A stretch of 64,000 bases of DNA from Epithemia pelagica (GCA_946965045.2 OX337235.1:1-64000), one strand, 5' to 3'. Shown: positions 1 to 15,297, counted from the stretch's first letter. Made by a program: numbers and translations. The notes: generated from the sequence alone by a model not told the origin.

Positions 1-512
1 CCTAACCCTAACCCTAACCCTAACCCTAACCCTAACCCTAACCCTAACCCTAACCCTAACCCTAACCCTAACCCTAACCCTAACCCTAACCCTAACCCTA
101 ACCCTAACCCTAACCCTAACCCTAACCCTAACCCTAACCCTAACCCTAACCCTAACCCTAACCCTAACCCTAACCCTAACCCTAACCCTAACCCTAACCC
201 TAACCCTAACCCTAACCCTAACCCTAACCCTAACCCTAACCCTAACCCTAACCCTAACCCTAACCCTAACCCTAACCCTAACCCTAACCCTAACCCTAAC
301 CCTAACCCTAACCCTAACCCTAACCCTAACCCTAACCCTAACCCTAACCCTAACCCTAACCCTAACCCTAACCCTAACCCTAACCCTAACCCTAACCCTA
401 ACCCTAACCCTAACCCTAACCCTAACCCTAACCCTAACCCTAACCCTAACCCTAACCCTAACCCTAACCCTAACCCTAACCCTAACCCTAACCCTAACCC
501 TAACCCTAACCC
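1..512. repeat. Telomeric tract (CCCTAA)n, ~85 units; left chromosome end
   Basis: Perfect CCCTAA tandem array from base 1 to 512, joined directly to unique sequence ATGGTTTTGCCC at 513. Confidence 0.99.
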
Positions 513-2899
513 ATGGTTTTGCCCGATCCACAAGGTTGAAGCATAAGTTTATGTCTTCCCGGTGAATTGGTGCACATATCAATTGCTGTTTCTTGATTGC
601 CTCGGAAAGTTGCCTCTTCATTACCCAACAACAATCGTAATGCTTCTAACCGATGCTGACGGCTTGTTATTGTCAGCTGATGGCATACCGAGTCCATGAT
701 CATACATTTGGTACCGATGTAACGATGAAATCGGGCATAGTAGATCTCATGACTGTTGCTCACGCGTGTCTGGTAGTTGGACATTGCAGTCTGTTGGGAG
801 TGCTTACTCAACTCACTCAATGCTGTTGAAGAGACCAATGCCTGACTGTTGCTGTCTGGAAAGAGCAAGTTCACAAGAGAAGTCCAGAACTGTCGAACAA
901 CCACCAAACCAGGACGACTATCCAAGCTGAAAATCTCTTGGGCAACATCCTCAAAGAAAAACCTCCGGTCATTACCATATTGTGGAAAAAATCTCCTTGC
1001 ATTGGGCCCATTCCAAACTTTCAGCACCACAACTCTGAAGAGAAATAGACACCTTGCTATGATCCGAGGCATCTTGTGTTCAACGGGGGGGGGGGGGGGG
1101 GTGGGTTGATCATAAGCTTGCAGTTTGGGTTGTTTACGACTCGGTGCAGAAACATATAAATCTTGGTAGTTTGTATTTTTCCACCGAAGCTGAGTCACAT
1201 CGAGACAATGGACCTCTGAGAACCGATCTGCACCACAGCCAAAACCATGGATGGCAAATTCCAACAAGGCAGTTAGTCGTTCGAACTGACTTTTCACCAC
1301 TTCCTTGCATTCCAAATCTTGTGTGTTGGTACCATCTGGCAGCGATCCCAAACCCTTGGACCACTCCACAATAGTCAAGTCACCAACTAAGCAGAGGAAT
1401 TTCTCGTATGCCTTTCCGACAAAGCATGCATCAAAAATACCATGGGCCTTTTCCACAACCGAAGGAACGACCTTAGACCAATGTGCTTTTTGGAATGCAT
1501 GTCCGTCAATAATGATATTGAAGAACTCATCGACCACAACCTCCCTTTTAGGAGGCTTCTCTTGATATTGCTTCCTCAAAGAATAAATCTTAGGACAGAG
1601 AAAGTGTATTGTAGGACAATGTCTGTACCGTTCCATGACCTGCTCCACCAACTTGCCCTGCCCATCGTAGTATTTTAAGCCAGCCGCAACCCCACAGCGA
1701 AGCAGATGTAAAAGGTCAGCTAGAAAGAGATGAAAGAAGACATGAGATTTGAACAACCAAGTATATTCATTGACAGGGGGAAAGGGGGACTCACCGAGTT
1801 CTTGAGCGGCAACTCCACATGATTTCAACCTCAAGCCATTCTTCGTCTTAGTGAACAACCTCTGCCGAGAGAACAGTAACACTACCCCTGAGTCGGACCA
1901 ACCAGAAATCTCACTGTCGAGTACCAACTCTGTCAGGAGTGACCCAAGAACACAATTTTGGAATGCAGTGTCCACAGAGAATCCATCACCTTCAACCTGG
2001 CGGCAAAAATAGTCCCATCTCTTCCACTGCCTCTGATGCAGGAAACACAAGAGAGAGAGGAGTAGAGGTTTCACTCGTTTGTCATAATCATGTCGATGGC
2101 TGAAATTCCATGAGTGATCCACATCACCATCATGGAAAGCAAACTTAGCAATCCGACTCCGAATGTCTGCTGGAATCCCCATTACGATCGAAGCCATCCT
2201 GTCCAGAAGGTAACAACCAACCTGATAGAGTCGGTTGATTGCAGTGTTATTTCCTCTCTTATGATACTCGGCTTCAAACATAATGCCTTGTTCAATGTCT
2301 CCAAGGGCATTCTCCAACGTGCCAGGAATCATATTACTCAGTACATCGGGCCACCTTCCTAAAGTGTTGCTTGGATGCAATAATGGTTCAATCAAACTTG
2401 CAAACTCGTTGGGTAACCTGCTGCGGGGCAGCGGCATGGTGAATATTGAATTCTCAACTTGAATTATTGGGGTCCAGTCGGTTTCTTGCTGCATGGTTTC
2501 TCTTTGGGGCCTTGGCATGAAGCATCCACACTTCAGCTTGAGGAAAGTCTTGGCAATGACTTTGGCACTAGCGCAACAACCAGCAACGTGCTTCTCGCAC
2601 AAAAGCTTCACATGAAACATCTTGTCACAGTCACTACAGAAATACTTGATTCTTGTATCATTTGACTCATGAATGAAACAATCAAACGGTTGGTTGTTGG
2701 CATTCTCCACAAGAGTGTGTATTTTGTTACCAAGATGTCTCCCAGGAAAGCGAAAGGACACCCCATGAATTTTGGAGCAGGTCTTGGCGTGGCGGGCAAG
2801 ACACTTCATGTTTGCTCGGAAACCACCACCACAGAGCTTACAGACCAAGCCACAGGGTGTGGCAAAGTCCACAAGCCCCAAGTAATTGTCAAACTCCAT
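506..2899 (-). CDS. Telomere-linked Zn-finger/tyrosine-recombinase-like/RecQ-like helicase fusion protein, copy 1, truncated by the telomere just after Walker A
   Basis: First ATG at 2899 (the track start at 2926 is TTG). N-terminal CxxC..H..C..H and CxxC..F..K..C..H zinc-finger-like motifs. YR-like catalytic order GADRFSE (R ~1223), RKQPK, VVRQFWTS (~893), LSKHSQQTAMSNY (H ~800, Y ~773). Then helicase Q-motif FRGNQ and Walker A PCGSGKT. The stop codon TAG (506-508) lies in the telomere. Confidence 0.75.
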   Translation of the reverse strand: MEFDNYLGLVDFATPCGLVCKLCGGGFRANMKCLARHAKTCSKIHGVSFRFPGRHLGNKIHTLVENANNQPFDCFIHESNDTRIKYFCSDCDKMFHVKLLCEKHVAGCCASAKVIAKTFLKLKCGCFMPRPQRETMQQETDWTPIIQVENSIFTMPLPRSRLPNEFASLIEPLLHPSNTLGRWPDVLSNMIPGTLENALGDIEQGIMFEAEYHKRGNNTAINRLYQVGCYLLDRMASIVMGIPADIRSRIAKFAFHDGDVDHSWNFSHRHDYDKRVKPLLLSLLCFLHQRQWKRWDYFCRQVEGDGFSVDTAFQNCVLGSLLTELVLDSEISGWSDSGVVLLFSRQRLFTKTKNGLRLKSCGVAAQELGESPFPPVNEYTWLFKSHVFFHLFLADLLHLLRCGVAAGLKYYDGQGKLVEQVMERYRHCPTIHFLCPKIYSLRKQYQEKPPKREVVVDEFFNIIIDGHAFQKAHWSKVVPSVVEKAHGIFDACFVGKAYEKFLCLVGDLTIVEWSKGLGSLPDGTNTQDLECKEVVKSQFERLTALLEFAIHGFGCGADRFSEVHCLDVTQLRWKNTNYQDLYVSAPSRKQPKLQAYDQPTPPPPPVEHKMPRIIARCLFLFRVVVLKVWNGPNARRFFPQYGNDRRFFFEDVAQEIFSLDSRPGLVVVRQFWTSLVNLLFPDSNSQALVSSTALSELSKHSQQTAMSNYQTRVSNSHEIYYARFHRYIGTKCMIMDSVCHQLTITSRQHRLEALRLLLGNEEATFRGNQETAIDMCTNSPGRHKLMLQPCGSGKTMG

Positions 2900-3257
2900 G
2901 GTGGCTGTTGTCGTTCCTATGGTCAAAATAGGTTTTGGACGTATGACCCTTTGCAGCCAAAAAAGAGGCCCTAAAGAGGGTCATTCACCTCAAAAACTGA
3001 AAAGGCCCTAACACCAGAGATCATTCACCTCAAAATCTTTGAGCGACAAGAAGGAATATGGTTTACTATGGAGAGTTAATGTAGGTTTGCAAATCGACCT
3101 TCTTGTGGTCGAAATCGACCTTTTTGTGGTCGCACTAAAATTTCGCACGCAACAATACAGTGATTCAAAATTGACCTTTTTGTGGTCGCGCATGTGATTC
3201 TACAGAATGAACTTAGTGCGCACGACAAAAAGGTCGATTTCTAGCAAAACCCTTAGG
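513..3257. repeat. Subtelomeric duplicated block, copy 1 (matches 4270-7009)
   Basis: Direct repeat at offset 3757/3753/3752. Differences seen: a few substitutions (e.g. 2567, 2794, ~2886, ~2936), poly-G 17 vs 13, and a 1-bp indel near 3126. Identity ends exactly at CCTTAGG. Confidence 0.97.
3091..3240. promoter_or_regulatory. Cluster of AAATCGACCTTTTTGTGGTCG-like motifs (3 direct + 1 inverted) at the element end; candidate protein-binding sites
   Basis: Copies at 3091-3111, 3112-3132 and 3168-3188, inverted copy at ~3221-3240, 10 bp from CCTTAGG (3251). Also present in copy 2 (~6843-6992). Function is inferred. Confidence 0.5.
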
Positions 3258-3375
3258 CCCAAAGAAGGGTCATTTCACACAAAAATCTGACCCAGTCGCA
3301 CTTGTAGTGACGGGAAATGAAACTAGTCGAGCTAGGACTAACTAATAAGCATGGGCATAGGTATGACTAGAATAG

Positions 3376-3505
3376 GGCTGTTCTAGTGGGCTGTTCTGCA
3401 GTGGGACAGCAGGCTGTTCTGCAGTGGGACAGGGCACTTCTGCAGTGGGACAGAGGGCGATTCTGCAGTGGGACAAGTGGGATGGGGGCTGTTCTGCAGT
3501 GGGAC
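3376..3505. repeat. Minisatellite with TTCTGCAGTGGGAC core x5
   Basis: Core at 3394, 3417, 3438, 3461 and 3492, with variable 7-17 bp linkers. Confidence 0.9.
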
Positions 3506-3791
3506 GCTAGAGTCTACGTAGGCCTACGGACAGGCACTTTCTCCTTAGGGTGTCACAATTGTAGCATCTAAACATGACAAGCCAATGCCCTGATTGGAAC
3601 GGATCTTCTTCACAGGCCGTCTCTGGGATGGAGATGGCGTTCCAGGCCCATTGTTGGTAGCCATTGCTGGTTTCCTCGTGTGCATGGAACAGAGGAAGAG
3701 ACATAACCAGCCGACTCTCAAGCAAAAGCAAGGATGGGCCTCTTTGCAAGAGTCATAATTCATGAAACAACAATGACCTTTTGTTGGGCCA

Positions 3792-3849
3792 ATTGAGGTT
3801 TTCAGGTGGAGATGTTGGTCCTATTGAGGTTTTCAGGTGAAGATGTTTG
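3792..3849. repeat. 31-bp tandem duplication (ATTGAGGTTTTCAGGTG.AGATGTT)
   Basis: Two copies starting at 3792 and 3823. Confidence 0.85.
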
Positions 3850-3996
3850 GCGCGAAGGGGCACGCAGGCGAGCTTTTCGCGCCAAAGAATGGGGGAACAA
3901 CTAAGAGTGCGGTAATGGTTGGTAATCAATGAAATTAAGGACTGATATTGAATATGAGTGCTTAGAAATTAGACTTGAGCGGGGCATAGATATTCT

Positions 3997-4096
3997 GTGC
4001 TCATCTGCACAAGGGGCAGTGCTCTTTTGCAACAAAAGGCATATATATCAGTGCTCATATGCACAGATACTATAGCCCCTTGTGCTCATATGCACA
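3997..4096. repeat. GTGCTCATATGCACA-like motif x4
   Basis: Copies at 3997, 4019 (degenerate), 4051 and 4082. Confidence 0.8.
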
Positions 4097-4121
4097 CGTT
4101 CAAATCCTACGGTGTCTAGTA

Positions 4122-6652
4122 CTAAAGACACCCAAAAAAGGCAAATATCCTTAGGGCCTTGACTTTGACCATTTGATAGCTAGCCAAGAAGTTGTAGGGA
4201 ACAAGAAACATGTTGGTCGAAGTCTTCAGTCCTCGAATGGATTCCACCACACAACGCACCAAGATGTTCATGGTTTTGCCCGATCCACAAGGTTGAAGCA
4301 TAAGTTTATGTCTTCCCGGTGAATTGGTGCACATATCAATTGCTGTTTCTTGATTGCCTCGGAAAGTTGCCTCTTCATTACCCAACAACAATCGTAATGC
4401 TTCTAACCGATGCTGACGGCTTGTTATTGTCAGCTGATGGCATACCGAGTCCATGATCATACATTTGGTACCGATGTAACGATGAAATCGGGCATAGTAG
4501 ATCTCATGACTGTTGCTCACGCGTGTCTGGTAGTTGGACATTGCAGTCTGTTGGGAGTGCTTACTCAACTCACTCAATGCTGTTGAAGAGACCAATGCCT
4601 GACTGTTGCTGTCTGGAAAGAGCAAGTTCACAAGAGAAGTCCAGAACTGTCGAACAACCACCAAACCAGGACGACTATCCAAGCTGAAAATCTCTTGGGC
4701 AACATCCTCAAAGAAAAACCTCCGGTCATTACCATATTGTGGAAAAAATCTCCTTGCATTGGGCCCATTCCAAACTTTCAGCACCACAACTCTGAAGAGA
4801 AATAGACACCTTGCTATGATCCGAGGCATCTTGTGTTCAACGGGGGGGGGGGGGTGGGTTGATCATAAGCTTGCAGTTTGGGTTGTTTACGACTCGGTGC
4901 AGAAACATATAAATCTTGGTAGTTTGTATTTTTCCACCGAAGCTGAGTCACATCGAGACAATGGACCTCTGAGAACCGATCTGCACCACAGCCAAAACCA
5001 TGGATGGCAAATTCCAACAAGGCAGTTAGTCGTTCGAACTGACTTTTCACCACTTCCTTGCATTCCAAATCTTGTGTGTTGGTACCATCTGGCAGCGATC
5101 CCAAACCCTTGGACCACTCCACAATAGTCAAGTCACCAACTAAGCAGAGGAATTTCTCGTATGCCTTTCCGACAAAGCATGCATCAAAAATACCATGGGC
5201 CTTTTCCACAACCGAAGGAACGACCTTAGACCAATGTGCTTTTTGGAATGCATGTCCGTCAATAATGATATTGAAGAACTCATCGACCACAACCTCCCTT
5301 TTAGGAGGCTTCTCTTGATATTGCTTCCTCAAAGAATAAATCTTAGGACAGAGAAAGTGTATTGTAGGACAATGTCTGTACCGTTCCATGACCTGCTCCA
5401 CCAACTTGCCCTGCCCATCGTAGTATTTTAAGCCAGCCGCAACCCCACAGCGAAGCAGATGTAAAAGGTCAGCTAGAAAGAGATGAAAGAAGACATGAGA
5501 TTTGAACAACCAAGTATATTCATTGACAGGGGGAAAGGGGGACTCACCGAGTTCTTGAGCGGCAACTCCACATGATTTCAACCTCAAGCCATTCTTCGTC
5601 TTAGTGAACAACCTCTGCCGAGAGAACAGTAACACTACCCCTGAGTCGGACCAACCAGAAATCTCACTGTCGAGTACCAACTCTGTCAGGAGTGACCCAA
5701 GAACACAATTTTGGAATGCAGTGTCCACAGAGAATCCATCACCTTCAACCTGGCGGCAAAAATAGTCCCATCTCTTCCACTGCCTCTGATGCAGGAAACA
5801 CAAGAGAGAGAGGAGTAGAGGTTTCACTCGTTTGTCATAATCATGTCGATGGCTGAAATTCCATGAGTGATCCACATCACCATCATGGAAAGCAAACTTA
5901 GCAATCCGACTCCGAATGTCTGCTGGAATCCCCATTACGATCGAAGCCATCCTGTCCAGAAGGTAACAACCAACCTGATAGAGTCGGTTGATTGCAGTGT
6001 TATTTCCTCTCTTATGATACTCGGCTTCAAACATAATGCCTTGTTCAATGTCTCCAAGGGCATTCTCCAACGTGCCAGGAATCATATTACTCAGTACATC
6101 GGGCCACCTTCCTAAAGTGTTGCTTGGATGCAATAATGGTTCAATCAAACTTGCAAACTCGTTGGGTAACCTGCTGCGGGGCAGCGGCATGGTGAATATT
6201 GAATTCTCAACTTGAATTATTGGGGTCCAGTCGGTTTCTTGCTGCATGGTTTCTCTTTGGGGCCTTGGCATGAAGCATCCACACTTCAGCTTGAGGAAAG
6301 TCTTGGCAATGACTTTGGCCCTAGCGCAACAACCAGCAACGTGCTTCTCGCACAAAAGCTTCACATGAAACATCTTGTCACAGTCACTACAGAAATACTT
6401 GATTCTTGTATCATTTGACTCATGAATGAAACAATCAAACGGTTGGTTGTTGGCATTCTCCACAAGAGTGTGTATTTTGTTACCAAGATGTCTCCCAGGA
6501 AAGCGAAAGGACACCCCATGAATTTTGGAGCAGGTCTTGGCGTGGCAGGCAAGACACTTCATGTTTGCTCGGAAACCACCACCACAGAGCTTACAGACCA
6601 AGCCACAGGGTGTGGCAAAGTCCACAAGCCCCAAGTAATCGTCAAACTCCAT
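4122..6652 (-). pseudogene. Zn-finger/YR/RecQ-like fusion, copy 2; frameshifted at the poly-G tract (13 G) and truncated after helicase motif Ia
   Basis: ORFs 4814-6679 and 4122-4829 together reproduce copy 1. The reading extends past Walker A to a motif-Ia-like FLVPYNFLASYQ, then loses helicase character at CCTTAGG (4149-4155). The frameshift may be a homopolymer sequencing error. Confidence 0.7.
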
Positions 6653-7009
6653 GGTGGCTGTTGTCGTTCCTATGGTCAAAATAGGTTTGGGACGTATGAC
6701 CCTTTGCAGCCAAAAAAGAGGCCCTAAAGAGGGTCATTCACCTCAAAAACTGAAAAGGCCCTAACACCAGAGATCATTCACCTCAAAATCTTTGAGCGAC
6801 AAGAAGGAATATGGTTTACTATGGAGAGTTAATGTAGGTTTGCAAATCGACCTTCTTGTGGTCGAAATCGACCTTTTTTGGTCGCACTAAAATTTCGCAC
6901 GCAACAATACAGTGATTCAAAATTGACCTTTTTGTGGTCGCGCATGTGATTCTACAGAATGAACTTAGTGCGCACGACAAAAAGGTCGATTTCTAGCAAA
7001 ACCCTTAGG
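4270..7009. repeat. Subtelomeric duplicated block, copy 2
   Basis: Near-identical to 513-3257. Confidence 0.97.
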
Positions 7010-7040
7010 GTTCTTGATAACCAATCTAACAGAAAGCCCG

Positions 7041-7740
7041 AAACCGCTTTAATTGTAATAGCGTGATTGGAATGAAGGACAGAGCTGAGTGAAACAAGCA
7101 ACAATCAGACAGATGCCCCAAGCCGCTTTAATTGTAGCGTGGTGATTGGAATGGCAGAGCTGCAAGATAGTGCAAGTGTCAAAGATAGGACAAATGTCGA
7201 CAATATTTCGAATGCTCTGGTGGTCGTTCTTCTTCTTGGGTTCCTCTTCTTCTTGTTTTCCTGTTGTAGCGGTTTTGGAGTGAAGGTTGTGGTTGAAAGG
7301 AAGCAAGCAACAATCAGACAGATGCCCCAAGCCGCTTTAGTTGTAGCGTGATTGGAATGGCAGAGCTGCAAGATAGTACAAGTGTCAATGTCTCGAATGC
7401 TCTGGCCGTGCTTGAGTTCCTCTTCTTCTGGTGCAGCGGTTTTGGAGTGAAGGTGGCTGAAGAGGAAGCAAGGAACAAAAAGGTGGCTGAAAAGGAACCA
7501 AGCAACAATCAGACAGATGCCCCAAGCCGCTTTAATTGTAGCGTGATTGGAATGGCAGAGCTGTTAGGTTGGTGAAAGAAGTTGGATAGGTGAAAGGATT
7601 GAAAAGGGAATCTCGGCAGAGAGAAAGCAAGCAACAAAAAGGTGGCTGAAAAGGAACCAACCAACAATCAGACAGATGCCCCAAGCCGCTTTAATTGTAG
7701 CGTGATTGAATGGCAGAGCTGTTAGGTTGATGAAAGAAGC
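7041..7740. repeat. Degenerate tandem array with a conserved ~65-bp core (CAACAATCAGACAGATGCCCCAAGCCGCTTTAATTGTAGCGTGATTGGAATGGCAGAGCTG), 4 full + 1 partial copies
   Basis: Cores at ~7099, ~7308, ~7503 and ~7662, partial at ~7044. The 95-145 bp intervening segments are related to each other. Confidence 0.9.
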
Positions 7741-8479
7741 TGGATAGATAATGGGATTGAACAGGGGAATCTCGATAGCGTTGGGTGATCGATTGCTGTT
7801 GTTGCTGCTGCTGCTGTTGTTGTTTGTTGTGGTGTGTTGGGTGGAGGTGGAGGGAGATGAATGAGCATCGATTCTGGTGGTTGTTGATTGTTGAATGACT
7901 AGTATGCTAGGTTGTTCGGTTTTATTCGATGGATCAGAGTGTCGAGTTGGTAATCCCCGCGGTTTGGGTGATTGGGAAGGAGGATCCATCTGAGACATTC
8001 TTTGGGACATCCATGTGCGTCAGTCTTTCTGGCAGCTGCTGTGTGATGTGGTGGGAGTGGAAATTCGTGATTCAAAGGTGAGGGGACAGACGCTTGCGCA
8101 TGAGGGTTGCGTCATGCGCGTCTCGGGGGGGGGTCAAGCGCGCCAGATAGTTGTAGTGCGCATTATCGGAGTGTGGCGCGCGTTATTCGTGGTTTGATCG
8201 CGGGCTTGTGCGCATTAAAATTGTTGCATGCGCGTGATAGTTAGCTCGATCTCTAGAACTAGCTAGAGAAATGTGCATTGTTAGACCTAGATTTGCAGAT
8301 TTAGTTGGGAAAGCAGGATTATAGTTAAAAACTGCGCATATAAAAATAAACTGCGCATAAAAAATTTTAATTCGGCGAATTTTTTCTAGAAATTCGCTTT
8401 TGGGGGTGGAAATCAAGCGCCAGGGCCCATTTCCCTCCTTAGATGTACGGCCACCCCATCATGATCCGACCATCACATG

Positions 8480-8960
8480 CTTCATATCGGTACCATGGCA
8501 GTGCATTGTGAGGGGCACAGTGCATGCGGGCCATTCTAGGAAATGACCAATACAGTGACGCTGTAATACGGCACAATAGGAGACCATGATGGCGTGAACA
8601 TACATTAGAGTTGCTGTTTTGCTATCAATACACTGTGTAACTACTACTGTGATGTGTATTGTGTACCAATAGGTGTCCAAACAATGCAAGATAAGAGCCA
8701 TATAGTTCATTTGAGTTGCTTCGTTCGAAATGGCAAGACGTCGCTTCCGTATCTCTGCCACGAGGCATGGCGCCTATGAGTCTGATGCATAATAGCCTTA
8801 ACCTTTAAATTTTGGTGATGCCGATGCATTCTGCACTATTGGTTTGAGGTCTATGACTAGGTAGACAGGTTTCACGAGTCCAAATAGGTGCACAACAACC
8901 TGTGCAACACCATGGCCCGTGTTGTTATCGTGGTGGAGGAAATGAGATATGCCGGCCGAC
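8480..8960 (-). pseudogene. Possible highly degenerate RecQ C-terminal remnant (motifs V/VI, Zn-binding region)
   Basis: Across shifting minus frames: STT..GHGVAQVVVHLFG, then RGRDTEATSCHF (compare GRAGRDG..A.C.L), then QRHCIGHFL..C...HC. Weak, by eye only. Confidence 0.25.
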
Positions 8961-9177
8961 TGGAAACAGGTTATTTTTGGCAAATAGGTATGGGGGTGGC
9001 TCAGAGAAATTACACCCTATAAGCCACCCCCGCTAGGGGGTATCCTTAGGATTATCATTGAGACAAAACTCCTTTAGCGTTAGTCCCTATCCATGTTGTC
9101 ATGTTACAATGGTCATATTGAATATAATCGCGCGGGAGAAAAAATGGCGCACCAGAGCCCGGCTTAATTGGTTTTTC

Positions 9178-9284
9178 AGCTCAAGTGCAAAGTGGCATAT
9201 CAAAACCAAAGCTCAAGTGCAAAAGGGGCCATACCTAGCTGTACCCACGGGAGCTCATATGCAAAATATGCAGCTCAAGTGCAA
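9178..9284. repeat. AGCTCAAGTGCAA / AGCTCATATGCAA motif x4
   Basis: Copies at 9178, 9210, 9252 and 9272; related to the motif at 3997-4096. Confidence 0.8.
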
Positions 9285-9939
9285 CCCGTAGAAAGCTACG
9301 GGCTCTGGTACAAAAACTAGAATCTAGACCTAAATTTCCTTAGGGTCATCGTCCTGGCTGCGGCCACTGTTGTTGGTGTAAATAGATGCGCTGTTGGGGG
9401 AAAGCCCACACATCAAAAGCTTGTTGGGCCACATGGGTCAATGGGACAATCGGTCGCCGAAAACTTGTACATACTGACTGACAAACTGTACGAGCTCGTA
9501 AAGGGGATTTACCCAAGCAATCCTATTGGGCATGGGGGCTTGCCAAACTTGCGATGGCTCCCATCCATTCTGTGTCCATTTTATTTGGTTGGGTATTTCA
9601 AGGCAGTTCCAAGACTTTCCCTTTCGTGTTGTGGCGTATCGTGCTTCTCTTGTGCGTGTCTATGCGTCCGACGACAGCAAAGCAGCAGCAATAACAACAA
9701 CAAGAACCTATTGCCGGTGGAGAAACCGACAAGGTTTATACTTGATTGGTAGAGGACATTGAATCCGGAGACGACGACGCCAGGCGTTGATTTGTTCAAG
9801 GGAAACGACCGCTCAATTTGTAGCAGTCTTTCGAGTTCATCGAGTCGGCAACGACAACAACAGTACCAACATTGCTCTGTGACACATACGTCTCATAACA
9901 ACCGCGGCCAACAATTTTACTACAATCACGCAAAAAACA

Positions 9940-12900
9940 ATGACTGCGGCGGTGGAGACGTCTACCGTTTCTCCTCCGGCGACTCCAAAAGCCAACAAGA
10001 AGAAAAAGGTCAGAAAGTCATTGTCGCTGACAGAAGAATCCATTGAAAATACCATTGAATCTCCCAATCGCTCCAAAAAGGAAACGACTACTACCAAGTC
10101 CAATAAGGAACGCAAGGAGAAAAAGGATTCGAAACTAAAAACGGGCAGCAATCACGGCAAAAACACTACTAAGGACGAATCACCATCCGAATCGCCGACA
10201 CGTTCCAAGGATGGAGATTCTTCGCCTCCTTCCTCCAAAACGTCCTCCCGCGACGACAATCCACTCAAAGCATCCACCAAACAATCAAAACCCAAAATTC
10301 GTCGCAGTCGTAGTGTGAAACGCATGGGAGGACGAGAATCATCCAAAAAGCTGTCTTCCTCGTCCAAAACCAAGTCCGACAACGACCCAGAGGATGACCA
10401 TAAGGCACGTGCTCGACGAAGTCGATCGCAACCAGCCCCTCGCAAGAAGCTTATCTCAAGCCTCACCAATAGTAGCTCCTCGAAACCATCTTCCGAAAAC
10501 AGTCTGCGCAAGTCCTCTTCGAGAAAATCAACGAGTGAAGCGACAAACAACAGGGACGACAAAGAATCAGAAATATCGCCGCCGTCTTCTCCAGGAAAGC
10601 GTGATGCTAAAGGTACCGACAAATCATCAAAATCATCCAAAGCATTGGGTCCATCGATTCCCGACATGAATTTGTCGAAAGACCCAATCAGCCTTTCTCC
10701 AAAAGACGACAAGGCAGAGCAGAAGAATATCAAGGATGGCAACGGCAAAGAGTCGAGCGATGCGGATGGCACCTCCGCCGTCGCAAAAAGCCGCAGTCCC
10801 CTTGCCAAGAAAGAATCACTCAAATCCAAAACTGATTCAGTGTCACCATCTCAATCACCAAAGAAATTACGACGGGCTCGATCCAGTAGTCCAGGTGGTG
10901 CGGTCTCCAAAAACAAACTACGGAGTGGATCCAAGAAAGATGGAACCACCAGCAGGACTAAGAAAGCGGATCGCAGATCCAAAATGTCACAAAGCATGTA
11001 TGCCTCCACATCATGTTTGCCCAGTATGGGCGACAATGGTCAGGAGGACCGTCGGGACGACAAGGATCATCATCCCTTGCATTCCTCCTTCTCTCAAATG
11101 ACGCCGTGGTATCAAGAGAAATCTCAAAACAGTACTACCACTACTCCTACCGTCGATACGGACCTGATCCTTTCTCCCACACGCAGCGTCACCAGCCCCA
11201 AAACCAAAAAGAAAAAGAAAAGCAAGTCTTTGGATCAATTGAAAGCAGAGTTGTCGATTGGGCATCTGTCTCTAGTCGACGGCAGCCCAGAAGAAGAAAA
11301 AAAGACGGAAAAGAGACGGAGTAGGGGACGGAGTACCAACCGGCGATCTCATGCCACCAATGCTAAGGACGATGATGGCGATGACCCTGACAGAGATACG
11401 ACCAAGAAGAAAAAGAAAAAGAAAAAAGAAAAGACCGACGACGAAGATGGCAAAGATAAGAAGAAAAAAGATAAAAAGAAGAAGAAGATTAAAAGAGTCA
11501 AGGAGGAGAAAGCCAAAGACGCGGACACAACATTGGAGGACTCCATTCACTTGATGATTGATGACGACGAGAATGATGATCATGTCTTTGATGATAATGT
11601 CTCACCAGTCCAAGCCCCGCTGCAAGAACAAGACGAACCACAACCGAAACGATCTTCGTTAACGAACCGCACCGCGAAATCCCCAAAACCAAACAAGAAT
11701 ATGAAGAGGTCTGGCAGCTCTCATAGTAGTGGAACGAGCAGCAAAACACCCAAAACTTCCAGCCCCAAAAAGAAAATCGACAAGGCACTCCGAAATAGCA
11801 GCCATGGAAAGAAAGAAGATCCTCCTGCTCCAATATCCACGGATGTCCGGGATTCACCGGAATCCAAACAACAGTCTAGCCAAGCCATTGCCGACGAATC
11901 AAACACCACTACGACCAAGGCTTCTACTACGTTGATGATAGAGTCTTTGTCTTCTCCTCCTACTTCACCGTCATCCGCCAAACGATCCAAGTCCGAACAA
12001 TCTACTCTTGAATCCTCTCCGAAACAAACGTCGTCACCCTTTTCCGCTAAAAACAGCACACAAACGCTGCCAAGTGGCTCATCCATGTCGATGGAAACAA
12101 ACGGCACGGCGTTTCCATCTTCTTCATCGCCTTCTTCTTCTTCTCCTCTACCGGCCAGCAAATGCGTTTCGGACCCTGATAAGAACCAGACACCTTCAGA
12201 GTCGCCTTCAGGCTCTTCTTCGGTCGAAATCGTAGGAAAAGAGAATGCACAACAGCAACAGGAAATGCGAAATCCTGAGGACAACTCGCCAGTGGTCGAC
12301 GAGCACACAGAAGAACTGGATTCTGATGATAAACTCGCAAAACCGCTCTCGTCTTCAAACAACGTGACGCTTACATCAAGAAAGGACGATGATGTAGGAG
12401 ACGCAGAGTATCGGACGCCTGATGAAAGCATTACGAGCACATCTGAATCAATGTTCAAGGATATAGAACCAACGGTGTCAAGTGAATTCACAGCAACTGG
12501 ATCACTGAGTGATAAAACCTCAACAGAATTACATGAATCCCATGCCACAGCACAAGAATCCTTCCAAGAAACACTCCAAACAGAAGAAGAAAGCAAGAAA
12601 GATGACACTGGCATGCAGAGTGGTCAGGATTCGCCTTCGATAGCAAACTCGTTCTCGCCAAGCACGGACGAGGGCAAGATAGTTGACGAAGACAAGGTAT
12701 CACCATCGATGGACGAAACTCTGGAGGAACCAGTTCGCGAGGACAAGCAAGTGCCATCGATAGAGGACCTAGAAGAGAGACCAGTTAGCGAGGACCAGCA
12801 ATCACCATTGATAGACGACGTTCGACAGGAAGCAGTTGACGAAGACAAGGAATCACCGTCGATGGACGACATTTCAGAGGCCCTAGAGGAGAAACCACTT

Positions 12901-15297
12901 AGTGAGAACCAGCAGCTACTATCAATAGACGACCTTGCAGAGGAAACCAAGGAATCACCGTCGATAGATGATAGTCAGGAGGAACCAGTTAGCGAGGACC
13001 ACCCACCTCTCTCCGTAGACGACCAAGAAGAGCAACCAGTGAGTGAGGATCAGGAGCTACCATCATTAGATGACCTTCGAGAGGAAGCAGTTGACGAAGA
13101 CAAGGAATCAACGTTGATGGATGAGATTGCTGAAGAACCAGTTAGCGAGGACAAGCAAGCGTCATTGATAGAGGGCCTAGAAGAGAAACCAGTAAGCGGG
13201 GACCAGAAATCTCCATCGAAAGACGACCTTGGAGAGGAAGCAGAGGACGAAGACAAGGAACCATCGTCGATGGATGGCATAGAGGAGGAAGCAGTTAGCG
13301 ATGACAAGCAAGCACCATCGATGGACGACCTACATGACAAACCAGCTACTGAGGCCGAGCAATCACCGTCGATAGACGACGTCCCAGAAGAGCAATCACC
13401 ATCAATAGACGACCTTCATGAGAAAACAACTGACGCGCAAATTATCGAGAATACAACCCTTGTCGTGTCTTCTTCATCGTCATCTCCACCCGAAGAATCA
13501 TTACCCGATGTGGAGGAATCGGCTTTGCGGAACGATTCTTTGTCCTCCGACGGCTCAGGCGCTCGACTTGGTGAAAATGAAGTGGGGAACATTAAACCAT
13601 CTTCTCCCGAAGGCTCAGTACCGGACGACGATAGTATCAGTACCTGCAGTAGCAGCAGTGACGCAGACATTTCGTTCTCGCAACAACGTCTACTCCCTGG
13701 CCGCAAACCACAACGTCTGAATCCACCAGAAAGCCAAACACACCCACGGCACACACGATGGAATTTTGGTCGAGTACATGAGTACTTTGTTCGACCAGAC
13801 GATGCCACGTTTTACAAGAATGAGGACTACATACGAGCTGCTGTCAATTTGCAGCGTTGTATTCGGGGTTGGAGGGCTCGATTGGTTCATCGCCTTCGTG
13901 TTCTGGAATTGACCCTGTCACAGCAAAAGACACTGTTGCGGCAAGCCAAGCTCCAAGTCACTGAAGAAATGAATAAGGAGAGGCAGACTGTGCTGAAAGA
14001 AGCCGACACGGAGCGGCGACAAATGCGGAAGGAGTATTCTGCGCAATCTACCAAGGTCGCGGGAGAATCCTTGCGCATTCAAAACGTACAATTGGAAAAA
14101 GAAAATCAAGATTTGCAAATTGAAATTCAACGATGCAAAGCGATCAATGGCCGACTTGTCAAAAAAGCTGCGAGTAAAACAACCGACACAGCCAAAGACA
14201 ATGGGACTCCCGAAAGTAAGGAAAAGAACAAGGACGAAAGCAAGGCAGATCGTAAGGAAAAGAAGCTCCAGCGACAGATATCACAATTGCAAGATCAACA
14301 AAAGCAGTTGAGATTGGTGGAAAACATGTATCAAGAACGTACCATTCAACTGGTTCATCGCATCCAAGAATACATGGAACACTATTGTCCTGCCGAACAT
14401 ACCATGAAACTGAGCTACCAAAAGTTTGCGGGGAGAGTGGTAGACTTGCTCGAGTCGCATGAAGCAAATGACGATGACGACATGTATTTTTACAAGGAAT
14501 CCGAAGAAGATCGAATGGAACAATTAACGGAATGGGTCATCTCTGCAGTGGTGGCGATCCCCGACAATACCCTGCCGTATCCCTCCAGCGAGATTTTGCA
14601 CATCAACATTGAGGAGTACAATAGCAAGAAAATGACAAAGAATCAAGACATTGGTAATGGGCAAGCCACTGAAAAGTCACCTACTTCGACCAAGAGTATT
14701 CACGGTTTGTCGGTTCCACTTTTGTCACCGTCCATCCCGTCCAAGTTTTTGTTGCCGTCACCATCAACTCCCGTTTCCTCCAATTCACCCAGTGCTCTGG
14801 CATCACCTTCGCATACATCCCCCGGGTTCTCTCCCTCTTCTCCAGGTGGGTTTGAAAAATCCTTGGCCAAAGCCTTGCCTTCCGCGCCCTTGCCGTTGTC
14901 CCCGGATCCCCACCAAGTCCGGCGACGACGAGCCGGAGGGATCCCTTCTCCCCGAATGCCTCAGCGACGAGCTATGGCAGGGCGACCGAGACCATCCGTC
15001 CCAGCCCCTTCTCTCGTGGACGCAAATGACGAGGACGCGGCATCGGACTATACCGAAGAGAGTGTCCACTCGGACTTTACCGAAGAAAGTGTATCGTCTT
15101 CGTCATCGTCCGACTATACCGAAGAAAGTATCGATAAGAGTGACAACGACAGTGACAGTGAGGAAGAAGAAGAAATGGAAGAATTGGAGATTGTCGAAGA
15201 AGAAGAAGAGGTTGAGGAGGATGACAATGACGCACCGACAGACACGGCGAAAACGACACGGGGATCCTCTGTAGTAATGGAAACCATTCCAGAGTAA
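9940..15297 (+). CDS. Large low-complexity protein (1785 aa) with Lys/Ser-rich N-terminus, acidic repeats, IQ motif and coiled coil
   Basis: Uninterrupted 5.36-kb ORF. IQ-like LQRCIRGWRAR at ~13852-13884, followed by a heptad-rich region. Confidence 0.85.
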   Translation: MTAAVETSTVSPPATPKANKKKKVRKSLSLTEESIENTIESPNRSKKETTTTKSNKERKEKKDSKLKTGSNHGKNTTKDESPSESPTRSKDGDSSPPSSKTSSRDDNPLKASTKQSKPKIRRSRSVKRMGGRESSKKLSSSSKTKSDNDPEDDHKARARRSRSQPAPRKKLISSLTNSSSSKPSSENSLRKSSSRKSTSEATNNRDDKESEISPPSSPGKRDAKGTDKSSKSSKALGPSIPDMNLSKDPISLSPKDDKAEQKNIKDGNGKESSDADGTSAVAKSRSPLAKKESLKSKTDSVSPSQSPKKLRRARSSSPGGAVSKNKLRSGSKKDGTTSRTKKADRRSKMSQSMYASTSCLPSMGDNGQEDRRDDKDHHPLHSSFSQMTPWYQEKSQNSTTTTPTVDTDLILSPTRSVTSPKTKKKKKSKSLDQLKAELSIGHLSLVDGSPEEEKKTEKRRSRGRSTNRRSHATNAKDDDGDDPDRDTTKKKKKKKKEKTDDEDGKDKKKKDKKKKKIKRVKEEKAKDADTTLEDSIHLMIDDDENDDHVFDDNVSPVQAPLQEQDEPQPKRSSLTNRTAKSPKPNKNMKRSGSSHSSGTSSKTPKTSSPKKKIDKALRNSSHGKKEDPPAPISTDVRDSPESKQQSSQAIADESNTTTTKASTTLMIESLSSPPTSPSSAKRSKSEQSTLESSPKQTSSPFSAKNSTQTLPSGSSMSMETNGTAFPSSSSPSSSSPLPASKCVSDPDKNQTPSESPSGSSSVEIVGKENAQQQQEMRNPEDNSPVVDEHTEELDSDDKLAKPLSSSNNVTLTSRKDDDVGDAEYRTPDESITSTSESMFKDIEPTVSSEFTATGSLSDKTSTELHESHATAQESFQETLQTEEESKKDDTGMQSGQDSPSIANSFSPSTDEGKIVDEDKVSPSMDETLEEPVREDKQVPSIEDLEERPVSEDQQSPLIDDVRQEAVDEDKESPSMDDISEALEEKPLSENQQLLSIDDLAEETKESPSIDDSQEEPVSEDHPPLSVDDQEEQPVSEDQELPSLDDLREEAVDEDKESTLMDEIAEEPVSEDKQASLIEGLEEKPVSGDQKSPSKDDLGEEAEDEDKEPSSMDGIEEEAVSDDKQAPSMDDLHDKPATEAEQSPSIDDVPEEQSPSIDDLHEKTTDAQIIENTTLVVSSSSSSPPEESLPDVEESALRNDSLSSDGSGARLGENEVGNIKPSSPEGSVPDDDSISTCSSSSDADISFSQQRLLPGRKPQRLNPPESQTHPRHTRWNFGRVHEYFVRPDDATFYKNEDYIRAAVNLQRCIRGWRARLVHRLRVLELTLSQQKTLLRQAKLQVTEEMNKERQTVLKEADTERRQMRKEYSAQSTKVAGESLRIQNVQLEKENQDLQIEIQRCKAINGRLVKKAASKTTDTAKDNGTPESKEKNKDESKADRKEKKLQRQISQLQDQQKQLRLVENMYQERTIQLVHRIQEYMEHYCPAEHTMKLSYQKFAGRVVDLLESHEANDDDDMYFYKESEEDRMEQLTEWVISAVVAIPDNTLPYPSSEILHINIEEYNSKKMTKNQDIGNGQATEKSPTSTKSIHGLSVPLLSPSIPSKFLLPSPSTPVSSNSPSALASPSHTSPGFSPSSPGGFEKSLAKALPSAPLPLSPDPHQVRRRRAGGIPSPRMPQRRAMAGRPRPSVPAPSLVDANDEDAASDYTEESVHSDFTEESVSSSSSSDYTEESIDKSDNDSDSEEEEEMEELEIVEEEEEVEEDDNDAPTDTAKTTRGSSVVMETIPE
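12676..13420 (+). repeat. Intragenic degenerate repeat, ~15 units of 13-20 aa (EEPVSEDKQSPSIDDL-like)
   Basis: Recurring GAGGAACCAGTTAGCGAGGAC...CCATCGATAGACGAC units. Confidence 0.85.

Follow-up and report, generated by a model that had tools for sequence, protein, structure and literature searches.

The chromosome ends of Epithemia pelagica carry the heptamer CCTTAGG at the boundaries of modular units. The clustering of this motif at chromosome ends, its polarity and its coincidence with module boundaries are real and hold beyond the single stretch of DNA in which they were first noticed. That stretch, hereafter the window, is one chromosome end with a length of 64,000 nt, and it was compared with eight other contig ends of the same genome (L001–L008). 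A preliminary description of the window had proposed that its subtelomere is built of modules delimited by CCTTAGG, and the motif indeed behaves as a polar, element-associated joining site both here and at the other ends. In our reading, CCTTAGG is the complement of 5'-(C)CCTAAGG, which would be the fixed centromere-side terminus of one-ended chromosome-end cassettes that are grafted onto eroded ends at CCC microhomology. The probability of this reading can be put at roughly 55%. Direct support comes from the fixed head and variable tail of the units, their polarity, the microhomology at their junctions, their truncations, and the fold and conserved residues of the encoded protein. A complete cassette would consist, in the direction of the telomere, of a CCCTAA(GG) terminus, a family-specific head that often contains a subterminal inverted repeat, one large gene, a 178-bp satellite and the telomere. 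The gene would encode a zinc finger, a domain of the tyrosine-recombinase/topoisomerase-IB fold and a superfamily 2 (SF2) helicase.

Motif sites, units and heads

The window begins at the left end of a chromosome, since its bases 1–510 read (CCCTAA)n. Of its 91 copies of CCCTAA, 84 lie inside this tract, whose repeat is also that of human telomeres. CCTTAGG is found at 3251, 3543, 4149, 7003, 9044 and 9338, six times out of six on the + strand and always within 3251–9344, and neither CCTTAGG nor CCTAAGG occurs in the remaining 54.6 kb of the 64-kb window. The sites at 3251 and 7003 represent one site in two copies of a tandem duplication, and there are therefore five independent sites; at four sites the next base is G, giving TTAGGG. 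An exact search agrees with the preliminary description on the number, strand and independence of the sites, on the four TTAGGG continuations and on their absence from the other ~55 kb, and the reported spacings of 292, 606, 2854, 2041 and 294 bp are correct. A seventh, degenerate boundary (CCTTAGA) lies at 8437–8443, so that the window holds seven boundaries and not six.

As a total for the whole window, six copies are not unusual (3.52 ± 1.74 expected; 13 of 100 shuffles reach 6). Because this count is not significant, it gave way to a survey of 7-mers with one copy of the duplication removed. CCTTAGG alone has five copies in the 6.1-kb subtelomere, outside longer repeats, with none on either strand elsewhere. 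In the orientation used for the eight other ends, the + strand carries the gene and the telomere lies at the right; L001 terminates in (TTAGGG)n. The ENA assembly that supplied them includes a contig 99.99% identical to the window, and the ends therefore belong to the same genome. The motif is not at background frequency in these other subtelomeres: L001 has 8 matches (1.28 ± 1.05 expected; none of 100 shuffles reaches 8), and across L001–L008 CCTAAGG is found 27 times on the + strand and 2 times on the opposite one. When the window and the eight other ends are taken together, 33 sites point toward the telomere and 2 away from it. CCTAAGG is preceded by C at 28 of the 33 sites, and the terminus is therefore CCCTAAGG.

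From the inside outward, the stack of the window comprises units of types G, E, F, A, C1, B and A, followed by the telomere. Its features, in order of position, are as follows:

1–510, + strand: terminal telomere tract (CCCTAA)n, read directly; left chromosome end
506–2926, − strand: open reading frame (ORF) of 806 aa; Cys/His zinc-finger-like N-terminal region, domain of the tyrosine-recombinase/topoisomerase-IB fold and start of an SF2 helicase
513–3257, − strand: distal A-type unit, 2,745 bp; fixed head at 3257, cut by the telomere within the ORF; matches A copies elsewhere from the head on
773–775 (Y), 800–802 (H), 893–895 (R), 1133–1135 (K) and 1223–1225 (R), − strand: codons of catalytic-type residues, from an alignment of 49 sequences
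3088–3249, − strand: subterminal repeats of the A head; three direct 22–25-mer copies and one inverted copy adjoining the terminus, a long inverted repeat
3251–3257, + strand: motif site 1, distal A head joined to truncated B; preceding base G, not C; microhomology CCTAA; contig branch point 3253
3258–3549, − strand: B-type unit, 292 bp; head and 21–23-bp repeats, telomere side cut; longer B copies run past the break
3543–3549, + strand: motif site 2, B head joined to truncated C1 at CCCT; branch points 3547 and 3551
3550–4155, − strand: C1-type unit, 606 bp; 5' part of a second family encoding a homologous recombinase-helicase protein
4149–4155, + strand: motif site 3, C1 head joined to the inner A unit, whose truncation lies at element position ~2,850 (CCCT); branch points 4153–4156
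4156–7009, − strand: inner A-type unit, 2,854 bp; ORF split into 4814–6679 and 4122–4829
7003–7009, + strand: motif site 4, inner A head, from motif search and flank comparison
7010–8446, − strand: F-type unit with the degenerate terminus 8437–8443; 160–210-bp repeats at 7040–7780
8447–9050, − strand: E-type unit, ~604 bp; head follows TCCTAAGG; candidate family
9044–9050, + strand: motif site 5, E head, from motif search
9051–9344, − strand: G-type unit, 294 bp, innermost; strong subterminal hairpin (DNA fold z = −5.2)
9338–9344, + strand: motif site 6, innermost junction, between chromosome-specific sequence and the first unit, from motif search

The two flanks of the motif differ in kind. 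The telomere-side flank invariably belongs to a small set of family-specific heads (A, A', B, C1, C2 and others), which read gttttgctagaaatcgacc in A, atatttgcc in C1, atatttcac in C2 and agaaagtgcc in B, with a few rarer ones. The centromere-side flank is different at each independent junction and is the interior of another, distally truncated unit. All copies retain the head and are truncated on the telomere side, and units range from 50 to ~4,400 bp. The lengths of A copies extend from 278 to 4,025 bp (including 278, 1,812, 2,844/2,854 and 3,103/3,267), those of C copies are 141, 606, 789, 1,158, 2,329, 2,884, 3,342 and 4,440 bp, and those of B copies are 50, 292, 452, 1,240 and 3,263 bp. 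With so many lengths per family and the head always kept, the units are not fixed-content cassettes bounded by two sites. Full-length terminal copies consist of the terminus, a leader of ~350 bp, an ORF of 1,300–1,450 aa, the 178-bp satellite and the telomere. The satellite was observed between the cassette ORF and the telomere at L001:19694–22386, at L002:14293–17698 and at the end of L003, and the telomere of L001 begins within a satellite unit.

The window fits into this scheme unit by unit. The tandem duplication (512–3257 and 4269–7009, 99.66–99.67% identity) stops exactly at the motif in both copies (3257/7009), as had been noted in the preliminary description. The helicase similarity of the inner A copy had been reported to stop near 4149–4155, and comparison with longer copies at other ends places this point at 4153–4155. 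The B head also follows the motif at L001:2256, L001:6380, L002:3717, L002:4556 and L004:5924. The C1 unit matches L001:3496, L001:12745, L005:8484, L005:16926 and L007:20617, where the similarity continues into an ORF of 1,275–1,316 aa. The homology of the F unit to L005:7826–8486 begins at window position 8445, and the centromere-side flanks are unrelated; in L005 this unit is cut at CCC and followed by a C1 head. No copy of the E unit is present among L001–L008, and the sequence proximal to 9344 has no similarity to these ends.

The constant part of the terminus is shorter than CCTTAGG. A', a subfamily of A with ~93% identity (L002, L003, L006 and L008), has the terminus CCCTAATAG, compared with CCCTAAGGG in A, and the invariant core is therefore CCCTAA and not CCTTAGG, as had been assumed in the preliminary description. 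The resemblance to a telomere unit that had been noticed there is present in inverted form: the terminus is one telomeric C-strand unit, inverted with respect to the terminal tract, and the complementary strand of the units ends in ...TTAGGG-3'. In B units, the homologous recombinase-helicase gene is reversed (L001:6786–9683, minus strand; 27% identical to A-protein residues 421–1208), and despite this the units show CCCTAAGG on the centromere side. The polarity of the motif thus follows the chromosome end and not the gene.

Subterminal inverted repeats were detected by DNA folding in A (z = −2.9), A' (z = −5.8), C1 (z = −2.6) and G (z = −5.2), and no significant one was detected in the B and E heads. 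Between A and A', both arms of the repeat are altered together, from GTCG/GTGG to CCGG (window 3088–3249; L003:9660–9735). Judged from sequence, such a joint change suggests that the repeat is a conserved hairpin or else a dimeric protein-binding site.

Several further observations concern the surroundings of the units. A G-run, which encodes poly-Pro in the opposite-strand ORF, differs in length between the distal A (1083–1101) and the inner A (4844–4856). The distal A keeps one frame of 806 aa, and the inner A is split into ORFs of 621 aa and 235 aa. The difference may be partly an assembly or sequencing error, because an ENA contig of the same DNA ends at the run. Copia-type (RVT_2) retroelement genes lie inside or adjoin the stacks at L002:5722–9636, L007:4784–6334 and L007:15757–19074. 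The first chromosome-specific gene after the stack of the window is an intron-less ORF of 1,785 aa (9940–15297) that is of low complexity, rich in Ser, Lys, Asp and Glu, and contains repeated acidic units.

The protein encoded by the units

The presence of a domain of tyrosine-recombinase type in the element, which had been suggested from the sequence of the window, is supported by structure prediction and conservation. Relatives of the 806-aa ORF were found in one ENA assembly only. The helicase start within this ORF ends at Walker A (GSGKT, 518–520). Pfam gives no match for the distal 806-aa copy and identifies DEAD and Helicase_C only in full-length copies. Identity between the A and C proteins amounts to 25% across ~1,200 aa, and for the region preceding the helicase there are 334 clusters of relatives among public proteins. 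Across 49 diverse sequences that are 18–32% identical to the query, R139, K169, R244 and H275 show no variation and Y284 is retained in at least 90%, with an H-to-Y spacing of 9. A model built from this alignment with AlphaFold has a predicted local distance difference test score (pLDDT) of 90 and a predicted template modelling score (pTM) of 0.86; an earlier model from 8 sequences was poor (pLDDT 55). In an exhaustive structure comparison with VIA-align, the top 30 matches were all tyrosine recombinases, topoisomerases IB, protelomerases or derived folds. The best was the archaeal Xer recombinase 4a8e_A (Z 9.3, root-mean-square deviation 4.1 Å, 162 residues aligned), and unrelated folds reached Z 4.3 or lower. 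The top Foldseek matches belong to the same families, with E values of 0.1–1. The predicted catalytic domain has the tyrosine-recombinase/topoisomerase-IB fold, with the catalytic-type residues R-K-R-H-Y conserved.

The helicase gives generic SF2 matches only, with eIF4A-type chains at E ~0.004 and DpdF and XPB below the cut-offs; an affinity to RecQ was not confirmed in these searches. Distant full-length homologues (~1,600 aa, with DEAD and Helicase_C) are encoded on the metagenome contigs L009–L011 from AT-richer organisms. Tandem repeats of ~200 bp lie upstream of the homologue gene on L011.

It was also observed that on the + strand all six sites of the window (3250–3257, 3542–3549, 4148–4155, 7002–7009, 9043–9050 and 9337–9344) read (C/T)CCTT followed by AGG. 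The pentamer (C/T)CCTT is the one cleaved by poxvirus topoisomerase IB, an enzyme of the same fold as here; the subfamily A' lacks it, and the resemblance is a lead only.

Junctions, a proposed grafting cycle and its alternatives

The junctions were compared with uninterrupted copies of the truncated units, which are available for 14 of them. Since automated comparison of BLAST breakpoints with the motif projects truncation points onto all full-length copies, and satellites add noise, the flanks were compared directly. In 13 of the 14 junctions, the uninterrupted copy has 3–6 nt in common with the left end of CCCTAAGG at the break: CCC in 5, CCCT in 5, CCCTA or CCTAA in 2 and CCCTAA in 1. The reference copy of the 14th has a substitution just upstream and also reads CCCC. 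CCC occupies 1.1% of positions in these loci, so that the microhomology cannot be due to chance. In 8 of the 13 junctions CCC is followed by T, against ~28% expected by our own estimate, and the pairing therefore extends to variable lengths. The window junctions at 3257, 3549 and 4155 have CCTAA, CCCT and CCCT in common, respectively. Where the match is imperfect, the base of the recipient is kept, as with the G before CCTAAGG at window position 3250 and with CCTCTAAGG at L004:2674. Evidence from public runs consists of assembled (Logan) contigs; in three such runs, the contig graph branches at 3253, 3547/3551 and 4153–4156.

These features can be combined in a cycle of erosion and grafting. 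A chromosome end would lose tip sequence and erode into its last unit. The ...TTAGGG-3' end on the complementary strand of a cassette would then pair, at the first usable CC(C) and sometimes at CCCT, CCCTA or CCTAA, with the strand that has its 3' end at the tip, and the cassette with its own telomere would be joined on or copied from there. Repeats of the cycle would leave a polar pile of tip-truncated cassettes, each starting with the motif. Erosion probably precedes addition; the recombinase-like domain of the cassette may itself make the precise end or do the joining, and the helicase may supply the single strands. The two A copies of the window are each other's closest relatives, since A copies at other ends are only 98.4–99.2% identical to them, and the outermost A was therefore copied from the inner A, either of this end itself or of its sister chromatid. 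Copying began at the terminus of the inner A, from a tip ending in ...GCCTAA inside B.

The main rival is host repair alone, in which microhomology-mediated break-induced replication or annealing would take place at CCCTAA heads and the encoded protein would not be catalytic in joining, for example as a telomere-linked helicase with another role. We consider this doubtful, but much of what is seen at the junctions speaks in its favour. Microhomology of 3–6 nt that is variable and leaves the recipient base in place at mismatches is typical of primer–template annealing, the last A copy was templated locally, and the many very short units (50–450 bp) resemble template switches. A capture at L004:12640–12656, primed from a short healed telomere at GGG, would mean that such repair acts in this genome. 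Three nucleotides cannot, however, explain the near-constant entry at the first base of the head in at least five unrelated head families, nor the conservation of the terminus between families whose proteins are 25% identical, nor the subterminal inverted repeats that co-vary between A and A'. We argue that a specific factor defines the CCCTAA end, because there is one repeat unit at the joint, the end is conserved across families of such low identity and the subterminal repeats co-vary. The recombinase/topoisomerase-like domain encoded by every family is the likely candidate for this factor.

An RNA-mediated route is improbable. Transcripts starting at CCCUAAGG would be reverse-transcribed, for example by the nearby copia-type elements, and complementary DNA ending in ...TTAGGG-3' would anneal to eroded ends, in a manner resembling the Ty1-mobilised Y' elements of yeast, or HeT-A in mirror image. 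Initiation of transcription yields a fixed 5' end, the terminus lies ~350 bp upstream of the A-type ORF and RVT_2 retroelements are present in these subtelomeres. Against this, the gene of B units is opposite in orientation to the motif, the ends are never 5'-truncated, and there are no poly(A) traces, with full-length copies ending in satellite and telomere.

Reciprocal integration and excision of circular cassettes at a 7-bp CCTTAGG overlap, as in integrons or Cryptons, is highly improbable. It would account for the recombinase-fold domain, the polar stack and three centromere-side breakpoints that recur with different telomere-side partners, and Cryptons are thought to recombine at 4–6-bp direct repeats (PMC3212892). 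The preliminary description had assumed a 7-bp crossover core common to both partners, but only the incoming unit carries the full motif, and recipients have just 3–6 nt, from CCC to CCCTAA. The A' terminus lacks GG, unit sizes are not fixed, and truncation is always on the same side. The integron-like stacking proposed in the same place is correct in so far as the stack is polar; fixed-size two-site cassettes, nested insertions and reciprocal products are not part of it. The predicted circles joined at CCTTAGG were not found in the contigs of four public runs, where the single joint that goes back corresponds to the tandem duplication. An assembly artefact or clustering by chance, which the within-chance count for the whole window might suggest, is effectively excluded by the extreme clustering and strand bias, by the recurrence of the pattern at eight other ends and by contig branch points of three separate runs at the same places.

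Two other candidates were ruled out. Nested insertion is excluded because the distal remainders of truncated units were never found further out in the stacks. Attachment of the Penelope-like/Athena type and ordinary interstitial telomere tracts do not agree with a single repeat that is inverted with respect to the terminal tract and always exactly one unit long.

Several observations weigh against the grafting cycle. The need for 3 nt fits microhomology-mediated repair by the host equally well. The catalytic domain is not matched by Pfam (Phage_integrase, DUF3504), NCBIfam or PDB sequence searches, and the first His of the HxxR motif is absent. The short metagenome contigs with distant homologues (L009–L011) show no CCCTAA terminus or telomere, and no free linear or circular cassette was found in the contigs of the four public runs. 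The three recurring breakpoints (A278 with B or A', A2844 with C1 or C2, and A3103/3267 with C1 or A) indicate that existing motifs are re-used, and they also fit exchange at such motifs. At L004:12640–12656, a truncated A is followed by an interstitial GGGTTAGGGTTAGGGTT, (TTAGGG)2.8 oriented as in a normal telomere, and this in turn by the interior of a C unit, joined at GGG where GGGAG stands in intact C copies; the end seems to have been healed first and to have captured sequence afterwards at GGG microhomology. The break at L005:7689, where A stops just before CCCC, is without a motif, and degenerate TCTAAGG termini exist.

Two of these loci deserve a separate description. Between the A break and the F head, L005:7689–7826 contains ~137 bp of unmatched sequence. 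At L008:10878–10900, A' is cut and followed by cgTCTAAGG and a further head type, aggttttttgaag, with no CCC microhomology at the break.

Relation to known systems and significance

Helicase genes linked to telomeres are found at the chromosome ends of many fungi and protists and have long been regarded as possible remnants of mobile elements; we know of no mechanism for their mobility. Examples are the Y' elements of yeast, tlh1/2 of fission yeast, TLH of Magnaporthe and UTASa of Ustilago. The units described here are similar in that a large SF2-helicase ORF is the last before the telomere and is present in multiple copies over the ends (nine here), including tandem copies. They are set apart from Y' and TLH by the fusion of the helicase to a domain of the tyrosine-recombinase/topoisomerase-IB fold, and by one exact terminus, an inverted telomere unit, that is joined at CCC microhomology. 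Between the copies of Y' lie TG tracts in telomere orientation, and these copies spread through homologous recombination.

The HeT-A, TART and TAHRE elements of Drosophila also form polar head-to-tail piles with a fixed centromere-side end, loss on the telomere side and additions at the tip. They are non-LTR (long terminal repeat) retrotransposons that are attached by a 3' oligo(A) tail and encode Gag and reverse transcriptase. The present units differ in having TTAGGG telomeres, a fixed CCCTAA end, no poly(A) and an encoded recombinase-helicase, and no reverse transcriptase or Gag domain was found by Pfam in the cassette proteins.

With integrons and with the single-strand integration of CTX phage by XerC, the units have in common the tyrosine-recombinase family, a polar stack, a folded site beside the crossover and the small amount of identity needed. 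Integron cassettes are complete, excisable and bounded by attC sites. In contrast, the units here are truncated and of variable length, their recipients carry 3–6 nt in place of complete sites, an attI/attC pair is absent, and the presumed reaction would be with a chromosome end. Topoisomerases IB and protelomerases, which work on DNA ends or generate them, have the same catalytic fold, and an R-K-R-H-Y pentad without the first His of HxxR is typical of topoisomerase IB. Here, the domain is instead fused to a helicase and zinc fingers within a repeated cassette, and no palindromic hairpin-telomere site of the protelomerase type was seen in the elements.

Cryptons are DNA transposons with a tyrosine recombinase, and CryptonS has been described in a diatom (PMC3212892). 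They have direct repeats of 4–6 bp at both ends (mostly TATGG in CryptonS), occupy dispersed sites, lack a helicase and are considered to move in circular form (PMC3212892). The element described here is one-ended and confined to telomeres, with only the centromere-side end fixed and all copies at chromosome ends, and it gives no DUF3504 or Phage_integrase signal in Pfam. Endogenous nimaviruses resemble it in the combination of a tyrosine recombinase with a zinc-binding domain of the C2H2 type and in their association with telomere repeats (PMC10871703). Their recombinases are specific for telomere repeats and insert within (TAACC)n arrays, with repeats flanking both sides (PMC10871703), whereas here a single inverted unit is present at one end and the targets are CCC in non-telomeric DNA.

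The elements lack defining features of Cryptons, of integrons and of telomeric retrotransposons. Full-text searches of the literature found no description of such elements, and the rebuilding of chromosome ends in this manner looks undescribed. We tentatively propose, with less assurance than for the grafted termini as such, that the cassettes form a new class of mobile DNA: one-ended elements carrying a telomere, whose own tyrosine-recombinase/topoisomerase-IB-like enzyme, fused to a helicase, would cut them precisely where the inverted telomere unit lies and attach them at CCC to chromosome ends that have lost their cap. Chromosome ends would in this way be rebuilt or taken over by means of DNA, independently of telomerase. 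If this were true, it would explain the spread of telomere-linked helicase genes. The joining signature provides a concrete model that can be tested with oligonucleotides, purified protein and a Tyr mutant. Even if the joining is performed by host repair, the stacks document with unusual clarity how chromosome ends have eroded and healed time and again in nature. If the enzyme performs it, the cassettes would represent a eukaryotic DNA element of a new type and might serve as a tool for joining DNA specifically at ends, and their addition would stand beside telomerase and telomeric retrotransposons as a third means by which chromosome ends are maintained or captured.

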